64,000 nt of DNA from Zygnema circumcarinatum SAG 698-1b (taxonomy: Eukaryota > Plantae > Zygnematophyceae): positions 558,001-622,000 of the forward strand of contig CM074810.1 in the NCBI GenBank assembly GCA_037447605.1. The letters run 5' to 3'. The translations under genes and the position numbers were made by a program. The notes beneath the pieces were generated by a model. It searched no databases. It was not told the DNA's origin and saw only the letters and a list, made by a program, of their open reading frames with translations. Below, one piece after another: positions 36,406 through 40,199 of the stretch (positions are counted from its first letter, which is position 1; each line of letters starts with the position of its first letter).

Positions 36406-36531
36406 GAGGGAGACAACATAAATGACATCATAACCAACAGCCACGACAGTCGCAGTGTACGAATCATCTTATTGCAAGTCCCAAAAGTTGTCCCACACGG
36501 GGTCCAGCAGTGCAGTGAGCAGTAGCCCCCA

Positions 36532-38826
36532 TCAGAACAGCGCCCGGAGAACCGCCGCCTCCTCCGCCATTTCTTCGATGCTGCGAACCTTCCTCTCCTT
36601 ATCAAGGTCGAGCTGCTCACCCTTTTTTGCAAGTGCCTCGGCGTTCTCACCAATCTGCACTGGAAATACGTCAGAAAGTATATCTCTCTCCCGTCCCTCC
36701 TCTGTCCCCCCTATCCCCCTTCCCCTCCGTCTCCCTCTCCCCCTTGCCGCCCCGCTCCCACTACAGTACCTACTGCATCCCCTCACTCCTTCCTCGCTCA
36801 TCCTCTCCCACTTCCGTTTTGTTGTCTCCGTCTCCCTCCTCCCTCTTCTCCCAAGCACTTTTCCTCCTATTTCTTCTCCGTCCCCTCTCGATCCCCTTCC
36901 CTCTCTGCTTCTCCCCCCCTCCCCCCCTTTCCCCTCCCCACCTTCCTACAGTACTTCTTTCTCCCACTCCTCCCTCCGCTCTCTGCTCCCTCACCCTCTC
37001 CTCTTCACCTTTTCCTGCCTCGCTCCTCTCCATCTCCCTCCCAATCTTCTTCTCTCAACCTTTCCCTTCTATCTGCTCCCTCCTCCCCCACACTCTTTCC
37101 TTTCAAACTCGCCCACTCACTCGCCCACCCCACCCCGCGCCTCCCACCTTCGTGCTTTACTTGAGGAACAGGACGAAGACCAGCCATTCTGAGAAACACA
37201 CTAACTCCCTTCAGAAAAAAGAGAAAAGGAAACGTACCGCATCATAGACGTCATCATTTTTTTTGAAGTCGCCAGTTTTCCGCGGCAAAATATGAATATG
37301 AACATGGGGAACCGTTTGACCAGCTTGCGGTCCATCCTGCCAAAAAGAAGCGTCCCAACCCTAATCAAAATACTTCAAGACAGGCACAAAAGAATGAAGG
37401 AAGAAGGGGGTGGGGGAGGGGGAGGGAACCTTGACACGTTGAATTAAGGTGGGGATGATGCTATCCCAAAGCCATTCATTGAGAAAGTAAAAGACAATGA
37501 ATAAACATGTGATCAAAGACCTAAACAAACTAAAATAAAAACCTACCATAAATAGGGAAAAAAGCGTATTCAAACATAAACAGTAAAACTAAACTAAACG
37601 AAAAACATTGAATGCAACTACATTCTTGAAGAAAACTGACCTGAATTGCGAATGTGAGCGAAGTCGCCCCATAGTGCGGCTCTATCACTTTCCCGACTCG
37701 CTGCGCGACCAGCCACAGGTCCGCCGCCTCCTCCGCGCTGAGGTCCGCAAAGCGCGGGGCCAAACGGCGGGACATCACTAACACATGTGCGCGCGGATGG
37801 GTCAAGGAGGCCTCGGGGATTGCATTGCACGCCGGGGGGGGGNNNNNNNNNNGAAGGCGGGGAAGGGAGACGGGGGAGGGGGAAGGGGGGAGAGGGGGGG
37901 TGGGGGAAAGGTGGGGGCGGGGAGGGGGGAGGCAGGGATGGGGAGGGGAAAATTCTATACATTTCAAAACCTTAACTAACTTGAAACTCATGAAAAATGA
38001 AAAATGCGCAATGTCCCCATAAAATTAAAACGTTAAAATTTAAGAAAAAGGTGATTTAGTGATGAGGATATGGCCTGCATGAGAAAAGCACAAAACGAGG
38101 GATGAGCGAAAAAAATGGGGGAAAAAAAGTAGGGGTGGGGGGCGAGGGGAGGATGGGGGGGTGTAAAAATCCCAAACTAGAAAACAATCCTTTAAATATG
38201 TCTTGAAAGGTACCAGAAATGAAATTAAAGGGGTCCTAGAATTCGCAAAACCAAAATTCACAAAAGCTGAGTTTCTCGAAGAAAACCAGTTTTTTCGAAC
38301 CAGTTTCCGAACAACCCACCGGGAACAACGGGCTTTTCGTTCACAATGGCCACCGACAATGGCGTCTCAAAAAAAGCCTCCCTCGAATCCAACTTCCACT
38401 TCCCAAAGTAAAGCTCCGTGGAGGTCGACGCCTTCAAAAGAAAATTCCCCCCCCTCCCCCCCCCCCTCCTCAAAAAAAAAAGAAAACAAAAAAAAAATTG
38501 AACAATGCAGTAGCAAACTATTCAAAAAGAAAGAAAAATTAAAATAAATAAACAGAGAAGAAAAAAAGGAATAGAATACAGAGGGGTTCGAAAGTAGAGC
38601 AAGACAGCGTCAGTACCTCGCCCGCCATAGCGCGCGCTTGCAGGAATTTGACGTGATACTGATTTGGGATGCCACGTGTCAGCCTGCAATTGCGTATGTG
38701 CCAGCTGGGAGGCACGAGCTGGGCGAGCGCTAATAGCTGCGAGCCACGTGGCAGTAGATGAGTGGCGGAGAGAGGAGCTCGCACGAGCGGAGTCACCCTG
38801 GCGACGAGAGCTCCCGAGAGGGCCAT
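36532..38826 (-). CDS. FHIT: Bis(5'-adenosyl)-triphosphatase (Fhit, HIT family) with an N-terminal transit-peptide-like extension
   Basis: Exons give [114 protein letters not shown], including the HVHIH triad. Confidence 0.96.
37787..38071 (-). other. U12-type AT-AC intron in FHIT
   Basis: 5' end ATATCCTC at 38071-38064, branch site TCCTTGAC at 37808-37801, terminal AC at 37788-37787. No AG is available directly before the HVL codons. Confidence 0.88.
38072..38074 (-). other. 3-nt microexon (GCC) of FHIT
   Basis: Preceded by gttttgtgcttttctcatgcag and followed by the U12 donor. It joins G|GC C|AT to restore the conserved P-G-H-V-L. Confidence 0.85.
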
Positions 38827-40199
38827 GGCAGCCAATGGGAGGCGGCGAAAGGGGACCGAATTTCTTAACGGGGAAATTTGGTCGCAGTTTTACTGGATGT
38901 CGTTTTAAAAGAATGATCAACTGTCAACTCGGTTTGTGGGGACAAGAGATGTTTGTGGAGTACTTAATTTTTGTTTCAGAATGATGGCAATTCCAGTTCC
39001 AATGAGACCATAGTTTTTTTTTATGTACAGTAAAATTTCTATCGAAGTGGTGAGAATATTACAAATTTTAGGCCCCCTGAACTCGGAATGTGCGCCAATC
39101 CATCGTCAACCGTTGAAACAGATCTCCACCGTTCAATTACGCTAGAGTTAATCGGTAAGCGCACCACAAAACGTCCTTCCCTGTGTCCTTAACATTAAAA
39201 GGTACACTGATCTGTGCGTATAATGACCGTACATCATTTGTACAGTCTACAACACGCTAGTTCAAGTGGTAGAGTTACAGTCAACTGCGCACATGGCGCT
39301 TCGTTACAGAGGACGGAACAAGTGAACATGGAAATCGGGATCGCGCCGCCACCCGCGAACCAACGGTTGCCATTCGTTGGCTCAAGTGAACGGTTTGGAA
39401 GATGTTGATGCGACAATGTTGAGTGGAAATGTGTGGAGTCAAACTTGTTCTTGTTGTTGTTATTCTTGTAGCTATGTGAGTTATGTGTTGTGTGTTGTTG
39501 TATGTTAGCTATGTTAGCTATGTGAGTTGACGTTGTTGAAGAAGGCGCGGCGGTGAAGTGAAGGCCGCGAGCTGCATCCGAAGCGTCATGTGGTGATCCC
39601 CATGATGAGAATGTGCTCATGCAATTGTGGTGGAGTTCATGGAGTGAGATTGTCCTAAAGTGGAATTAGGAAAAGTATTTTAGAAAAACTTTTAGAAACC
39701 CTAAAAATTAAAAGGTTGAGAGAGAGACAAGCAGAACTGAACACGGAACTGCAACAGCAACACGAAGACGCAGTTCAGAAGATTGCAGAGAGAGATCGAG
39801 GACGGAGATCGAGTGATTCCCGTGGAATCGCAGATCTACTAGGCAGCATCCACATGGATCCGCACGATCGTAACCGCTCCTTTGATCCAGATCGACCATT
39901 GATCGGACCCTTCCCGATCGCCCCCATTCGCCGTACGCCGTAACAACCGTTCGTCCGTACTGTTCGTACTTTTTATTGTTGTACAGTACAGTACAGTACA
40001 GTACTGTATTTGATTCGTACATACTAACGGTTAACGGTTTTTATACATCCCGTTTAACTGGTTACATGGAACCGTACCGTTTGACATGACAGCGCTCAAC
40101 GGCCACATGGAGACTCTCTGAGCCTCTTCCTCTCAATGACGCTCGCACGTGCCAAGGGTGGCCAGGATTGGAGGAGGAAGGCTAGGCGCTGCCGTCACC

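Follow-up and report, generated by a model that had tools for sequence, protein, structure and literature searches.

Introduction

The coding microexons of plants (1-15 nucleotides, nt; Yu et al., 2022, PMC8831610; MEPDB, PMC12409088), among them the 1-nt exons of APC11 and VPS55, are tiny internal exons of main transcripts, which are bounded by strong splice signals, conserved to early land plants or beyond, and often mis-annotated. An exon alike in all these respects, 3 nt in length, is very probably present in the FHIT gene that we describe here, which lies on a stretch of 64,000 nt from the streptophyte alga Zygnema circumcarinatum SAG 698-1b (GenBank assembly GCA_037447605.1, contig CM074810.1, positions 558,001 to 622,000 of the forward strand). 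This whole stretch is called the window below, and positions are counted from its first letter. The exon differs from the plant microexons surveyed so far (PMC8831610) in that its downstream splice site belongs to the minor spliceosome. Both that survey and its modelling tool took only GT-AG and GC-AG introns (PMC8831610), which puts any exon next to an AT-AC intron out of their reach. The text of the survey mentions neither FHIT nor U12, and FHIT is likewise absent from the supplements examined.

Three other systems bear on this locus. U12-type AT-AC introns carry ATATCCTY at their 5' splice site and TCCTTRAC 10-15 nt before the closing AC, need no long pyrimidine tract, and keep their position across distant species while being lost in some lineages, all of which is true of the AT-AC intron of FHIT. 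What sets the latter apart from usual U12-type introns is the exon upstream of its 5' splice site, which measures only 3 nt, so that an exon-definition contact with the upstream U2-type 3' splice site would need to operate over 3 nt, if it operates at all. In the U11 small nuclear ribonucleoprotein (snRNP)-binding splicing enhancers (USSE) of SNRNP48 and RNPC3, binding of U11 at a U12-type 5' splice-site sequence activates an upstream U2-type 3' splice site (PMC8329584). In both arrangements, a U2-type 3' splice site is closely followed by a U12-type 5' splice-site sequence. However, the USSE sites are themselves unspliced and lead to a regulated, non-productive isoform, whereas the AT-AC intron of FHIT is removed and a normal mRNA results. 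Finally, the U2/U12 twintrons and other nested or competing introns (PMC8329584) also bring the sites of both spliceosomes close together in one gene, but their introns overlap and one or the other is used, while those of FHIT stand side by side and are both removed in every mature transcript seen.

In the searchable literature, we found no paper that combines FHIT with U12-type introns and, from what were mostly titles and abstract openings, none that describes a microexon with a U12-type intron at one of its borders. As far as we searched, a conserved microexon whose two borders belong to different spliceosomes is apparently undescribed in print, though it is implicit in some NCBI gene models.

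Results

Splice Signals and Transcripts Around the Microexon

The FHIT pre-mRNA of this alga has, with high probability, a 3-nt internal exon, GCC, between a U2-type GT-AG intron and a U12-type AT-AC intron. Removal of both introns joins CCC G, GCC and AT GTG into Pro-Gly-His-Val, common to FHIT proteins, the microexon completing the Gly codon of the P-G-H motif (bases 2 and 3) and opening its His codon (base 1). A first-pass annotation of the window had proposed this GT-AG intron, 3-nt exon and AT-AC intron as the way in which P-G-H is built, and the proposal is borne out by transcripts from four studies, by a unique genomic source for the three bases and by conservation. Its elements (CCC G/gtggg, cag, GCC, the U12-type donor, the branch site and AC/AT GTG TTA, with no AG before HVL; slashes mark splice borders) were all found in place.

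On the coding strand, exon 2 ends ...GTT GTT CCC G at 38320 (peptide ...KPVVP) and is followed by gtgggt. The microexon stands in the context of a pyrimidine tract, cag (ending at 38075)/GCC/ATATCCTC. The latter element, at 38071-38064 and directly at the exon border, is a U12-type 5' splice site that matches /ATATCCTY. The branch site TCCTTGAC is located at 37808-37801, with its branch A at 37802, 15 nt before the last intron base. The intron closes with AC at 37788-37787 and exon 4 starts at 37786 (AC/ATGTGTTA, read as AT GTG TTA), so that the HVL exon has no directly preceding AG acceptor. Six GCC triplets occur in 38319-37787, and that at 38074-38072 is the sole one to be both preceded by AG and followed by AT or GT; the GCC at 37811 also follows AG but runs into tc, and overlaps the branch site. 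The string AGGNCATATCCY was found once in the 64-kb window (both strands), against 0.07 expected from shuffles. By contrast, TCCTTRAC followed by AC after 8-14 nt was found twice against 1.84 expected and is thus not rare by itself; the non-chance aspect of this pattern is that one copy ends exactly at the exon boundary. No small nuclear RNA gene was found in the window, an Rfam scan of which was empty.

Transcript data consisted of Logan contigs. Seven runs under one organism label contain part of the stretch and four of them, from four studies, were aligned. In each of these four, one contig aligns over five exon blocks (0 mismatches) and leaves out the other introns at GT-AG borders, from which it follows that the contigs derive from spliced RNA. 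At the joint 37787/38319, all four runs have a single additional letter (plus-strand G), the aligner having taken up one flanking base on either side. Read on the coding strand from 38320 to 37786, the transcripts carry CCCGG + C + CATGTG, i.e., CCCGGCCATGTG, as the first-pass annotation had predicted for this junction, and no spliced contig lacks the GCC. In the assembled DNA, the left flank accounts for no more than CCCGG and the right flank for no more than CATGTG. At least one base is therefore missing from both flanks, and no single intron in this DNA yields CCCGGCCATGTG; given canonical ends (G/gt on the left, ac/AT on the right), the inserted piece is the GCC flanked by ag and at, namely 38074-38072. 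The three mRNA bases are indeed contiguous with neither neighbouring exon, and their genomic copy is flanked by an acceptor and a donor, the 10-N gap in the interval being unread. In vivo, the AT-AC intron is cut out precisely at its AT and AC ends, the contigs of the four runs reading ...GCC/ATGTG.... A single spliced form, with GCC included, was seen in each run, at the level of contigs, which drop rare variants.

A separate observation concerns run X3, in which a contig lying wholly within the AT-AC intron (37885-38049) has a depth of 28, vs. 0-6 for the other introns and 169 for the exons. This would fit slow removal of a minor intron, but contig depth is unreliable and was not used as evidence.

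Conservation of the Layout in Other Lineages

Relatives were collected in several ways. A full HMMER search with the exon-4 peptide returned 422 of them, and a 5-residue word search with the stop-free open reading frame (ORF) around exon 4 returned 2 candidates and no match, too few words being shared; look-ups by exact product gave no match either. The exon-4 alignment was too weakly conserved for a locus scan; an exon-5 profile was used on the metagenomes of the Joint Genome Institute (JGI), giving 80 loci, in which exons were placed by tblastn before a motif scan. In many of the predictions that were of the ORF type or faulty, a translated intron end directly before H-VLV hinted at an ...ac/AT or a ...cag/GN CAT border.

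The full layout was found in 18 instances including that of the window, corresponding to about 15 distinct loci; the same AT-AC intron and microexon, which the first-pass annotation had suggested looking for in orthologous FHIT genes, are thus present in 17 further instances from about 14 other loci. In these loci, the layout reads CCN G/gt...cag/GTC/ATATCCTY...CTTRAC...AC/ATGT. Five features are common to the 18 instances: CCN G/gt; (c/t)(g/a)cag; G(T/C)C; ATATCC(T/C); and CTT(A/G/T)AC situated 10-15 nt before AC/AT(G/T)T. The 17 orthologous instances have ATATCCT(T/C) as the 5' splice site and a branch site xxCTT(A/G/T)AC at 10-14 nt. Intron lengths range from 79 to 1800 nt for the GT-AG intron and from 87 to 4672 nt for the AT-AC intron. 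For example, a metagenomic relative (L001/L002) reads CCT G/gtgagt, a 287-nt intron, ccgcag/GTC/ATATCCTTT, TTCCTTAAC and AC/ATGTG. In Solanum pennellii (HG975448.1), tcatgcag/GTC/ATATCCTTG is followed by an AT-AC intron of about 4.7 kb, TACTTAAC and AC/ATGTG. Coffea arabica reads CCN G/gtaatt, ttttgcag/GTC/ATATCCTTT and AC/ATGTG, and its NCBI product, with PLLPGHVLV, is not encodable without the microexon.

The microexon is GTC in every instance but that of the window (GCC). The one base that varies falls at the wobble position of the Gly codon and leaves the protein unchanged, which is the mark of a coding constraint. The P-G-H motif is invariant in correctly predicted orthologues. Wherever orthologous loci have introns in this region, the GT-AG intron interrupts the Gly codon at the same place, in phase 1. 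The AT-AC intron is lacking from four loci (L006-L009), which have a single GT-AG intron of 68 nt ending tttcag/GT CAT and lie next to a CAF1C/WD40 gene and a transthyretin-like gene. This neighbourhood presumably matches Arabidopsis At5g58220-58240, and we take these loci to be from Brassicaceae. In five other eukaryotic loci (L051, L066, L077, L079, and L080), the GT-AG intron, again in phase 1 of the Gly codon, stands alone, and 47 loci have no intron at this position. The AT-AC intron 3 nt downstream was seen only in this alga, in one metagenomic relative and in land-plant-like loci, and it is absent from Arabidopsis-like loci. In this unrooted comparison, the simplest history would be that of an old GT-AG intron, with a precise loss of the AT-AC intron in some lineages, which would fuse the microexon to the next exon. 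AT5G58240, which is down-regulated in the AT-AC splicing mutant drol1, was considered as a candidate and rejected: it is absent from the AT-AC intron table of the paper on that mutant, and the Arabidopsis-like loci have no AT-AC intron. Another observation was made on a metagenomic plant contig (L029), on which an FHIT-like gene is present twice (NLRPLLP and NLRPAVP), probably as a tandem duplication; both copies show the complete layout of microexon and AT-AC intron.

As regards existing gene models, the expectation of the first-pass annotation that standard annotation would miss the exon held in part. Three models are wrong at the junction (Solanum pennellii XP_015086942.1, Glycine soja KAL5170624.1, and Spirogloea muscicola SM000131S26693), their spurious N-terminal sequence being read from the last part of the AT-AC intron as far as the His codon; that of Spirogloea muscicola, 901 aa long, is in addition fused to an upstream gene. 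By contrast, the NCBI products of Coffea arabica, Benincasa, Herrania and Amborella read PGH-VLV and are correct at the junction. Six predicted relatives (P0057, P0060, P0054, P0055, P0100, and P0107) have PGN-VLV, PGY-VLV or D-VLV in place of PGH-VLV. These may be mis-modelled junctions, or may come from lineages whose AT-AC intron became AG-ended.

Gene Structure and Identity

The FHIT gene, a member of the HIT family, has six exons on the minus strand, at about 38950-36450 of the window (Table 1). Pfam HIT was detected above cut-off in exon 4 (E 1.1e-4) and exon 5 (E 1.1e-6), and the peptide of exon 2 matches the N-terminal part of FHIT orthologues (tblastn). The best PDB matches of exon 4 are chains of Fhit, or bis(5'-adenosyl)-triphosphatase (E 8e-10 to 4e-8, residues 37-83). 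It follows from this alignment that the His residue split by the AT-AC intron corresponds to His35 of human Fhit. Assignment to the FHIT branch is based on the HIT domain, an HxHxHxx triad, a closest similarity to Fhit and named relatives that are annotated FHIT.

Table 1. Exons and introns of the FHIT gene, in order of transcription (positions in the window).
Feature	Positions	Strand	Basis
Exon 1	38617..38950	-	Ends GGC GAG, then gtactg; contigs of runs X1 (38616-38887) and X6 (to 38950), 0 mismatches; outer limit is the contig reach
Intron 1, GT-AG, 185 nt, with a long G run	38432..38616	-	One contig runs 38616 to 38430 in all four runs; gt...ag ends read
Exon 2, 112 nt, 37 residues and first G of the Gly codon	38320..38431	-	Sequence and transcripts
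U2-type GT-AG intron, 245 nt (gtgggt...pyrimidine tract...cag)	38075..38319	-	Absent from transcripts
Very probable 3-nt microexon GCC	38072..38074	-	Transcripts; sole GCC with AG before and AT after; orthologue layout
U12-type AT-AC intron, 285 nt as assembled	37787..38071	-	Absent from transcripts; conserved signals in orthologues
Exon 4, 146 nt, AT of the His codon and 48 residues (VLVMSRR...FAIQ)	37641..37786	-	Transcripts; Pfam HIT; PDB FHIT
GT-AG intron, 304 nt	37337..37640	-	Transcript joint 37335/37640 in all four runs
Exon 5, 99 nt, 33 residues, with the histidine triad (HVHIHIL)	37238..37336	-	Transcripts; Pfam HIT
GT-AG intron, 583 nt, purine-rich, of low complexity	36655..37237	-	Transcript joint 36654/37238 in all four runs
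Last exon, 40 residues, stop at 36534-36532, then 3' untranslated region	36450..36654	-	Sequence and transcripts

Exon 1 contains two in-frame ATGs, at 38826 and 38628. Translation from the upstream one would place about 66 residues, with Ala, Leu, Arg and Ser abundant among them, before the second Met. This extension looks like an organelle transit peptide, and FHIT may be dually targeted via alternative start codons. FHIT isoforms of Coffea, Herrania and Benincasa likewise bear N-terminal extensions. Long low-complexity runs, rich in C or in G/A (CCCTCCCC-type, GGGAGG-type, and a run of over 20 G), fill the introns of the gene, at 37850-37960, 38125-38170, 38440-38470 and 36700-37130. The window contains nine 10-N gaps in total, one of which falls in such a low-complexity run of the AT-AC intron: the N run at 37843-37852 is located in C-rich sequence between the 5' splice site and the branch site.

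Discussion

This work indicates that two bases of a conserved Gly codon and one base of the adjoining His codon are very probably carried by an exon of their own, one border of which has U2-type and the other U12-type signals. Three other accounts of the transcripts were considered. Of these, the one that survives best, though improbable, is that the microexon is an alternative exon, with regulated skipping leading to an Fhit that lacks the Gly-His pair (P-D-V) or to a frameshifted target of decay, and with the junction CCCGATGTG in place of CCCGGCCATGTG. The first-pass annotation had suggested such a regulatory switch. Alternative splicing is indeed common among microexons, and detention of the introns next to them is frequent in plants (PMC8831610). 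An angiosperm transcript, L005, also retains the AT-AC intron (see below). Minor introns are, moreover, generally spliced slowly. However, no evidence for the switch was found: the single GCC-including form in each of the four runs, from four studies, stands against it, and an exact skip would require a GT...AC hybrid, in which a U2-type donor is used with a U12-type branch site and an AC acceptor. To our knowledge, there is no established case of such a hybrid. The nearest AG acceptor, after ccgag at 37812, shifts the frame, while the P-G-H motif is invariant in correctly predicted orthologues; this acceptor, joined to CCC G, would accordingly not give the peptide that the first-pass annotation had derived from it, being out of frame with HVL. 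A biologically meaningful skipping isoform is thus unlikely.

It is less probable again that the three bases come from elsewhere, either from another GCC of the interval or from an element within the gap at 37843-37852. In favor of this account, a 3-nt exon is not placeable by alignment, six GCC triplets are available and the content of the gap is unread. Five of these six triplets, however, have no usable splice sites, while the site at 38074 has a complete U2-type acceptor and a complete U12-type donor, and the orthologues place their microexon in the same context. The least probable account of all is that of a single non-canonical intron, the extra bases being due to an assembly error or polymorphism at the exon border (e.g., a genome reading ...CCATGTG, or an exon 2 longer by 1-3 bases), since, even though the assembly gap is only 56 nt away and no DNA-type contig covers 37787-37870, so that the sequence upstream of exon 4 is without independent confirmation, the assembled DNA gives at most CCCGG + CATGTG, one base short of the mRNA, the intron would need non-canonical tg...ca ends, and the AC/ATGT border with its U12-type branch motif is kept together with cag/GNC/ATATCC in about 14 other loci from independent assemblies.

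Several points nevertheless weigh against a 3-nt exon between a major and a minor intron, or against parts of this reading. Three bases are not uniquely mappable by sequence, and their placement at 38074-38072 rests on flanking signals and conservation. We infer the use of the U12-dependent spliceosome from consensus motifs, and the branch-site distance, 15 nt, is among the longest with which U12-type introns are functional. Rare isoforms, such as those produced by skipping or by cryptic sites, would escape Logan contigs. The N gap in the AT-AC intron is bridged by no contig examined, so that the length of this intron (285 nt) is uncertain; the transcripts join the flanking exons in the right order, orientation and frame, and the gap therefore leaves the coding reading unaffected. 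Lastly, the evidence on the order of intron removal, set out below, is from a different species and an aberrant transcript, not from the alga.

From a mechanistic point of view, the consensus motifs suggest that the major spliceosome would use the cag acceptor of the microexon and that the minor spliceosome (U11/U12) would take out the AT-AC intron. The U11/U12 di-snRNP reads the 5' splice site and the branch site as a unit, and almost only intron sequence. Recognition of a U12-type 5' splice site is thus almost wholly intronic, which suits an intron-defined removal. Since a 3-nt exon cannot carry U2AF at its acceptor and U11 at its donor together, the two introns would most likely be recognised by intron definition and removed one after the other. 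The same steric point has been made for small exons, whose flanking introns were reported to be detained (PMC8831610).

The angiosperm transcript L005, which is partly processed, with exons 4, 5 and 6 joined and the AT-AC intron retained, bears on the order of these steps. When L005:1-1058 was compared with the genomic locus L017:241-1906 (94-97% identity), positions 1333-1906 of L017 were found to be missing. This segment opens with GTGAGA and extends to the cag that precedes GTC, from which it follows that a cryptic donor in intron 1 was spliced exactly to the acceptor of the microexon while the AT-AC intron remained in place. The microexon acceptor is thus usable before removal of the minor intron, and the U2-type step would seem able to take place first; L005 itself could be a detained or decay-bound intermediate.

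More tentatively, the 3-nt spacing may itself be functional. The U11/U12 di-snRNP on the 5' splice site of the AT-AC intron would then act, in the manner of a USSE, as the exon-definition partner of the upstream U2-type acceptor, the order of removal would be obligatory, and the output of FHIT in most streptophytes would be tied to minor-spliceosome activity. We consider this possible but rather doubtful; if true, it would explain why the arrangement is common to a streptophyte alga and flowering plants.

The consequences for annotation are concrete. As the main surveys of plant microexons skip introns other than GT-AG and GC-AG, and as several models are wrong at the junction, exons of this kind point to a definite, searchable class of annotation error. 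With regard to splicing, a 3-nt exon between a major acceptor and a minor donor is a natural extreme case for exon and intron recognition. Two machines cannot both sit on three bases, and it is therefore possible to test directly, on the FHIT gene, whether splicing is ordered and intron-defined and whether the two spliceosomes influence each other. The arrangement being common to a streptophyte alga and flowering plants, and absent from Arabidopsis-like loci, it provides both comparative material and a natural control.

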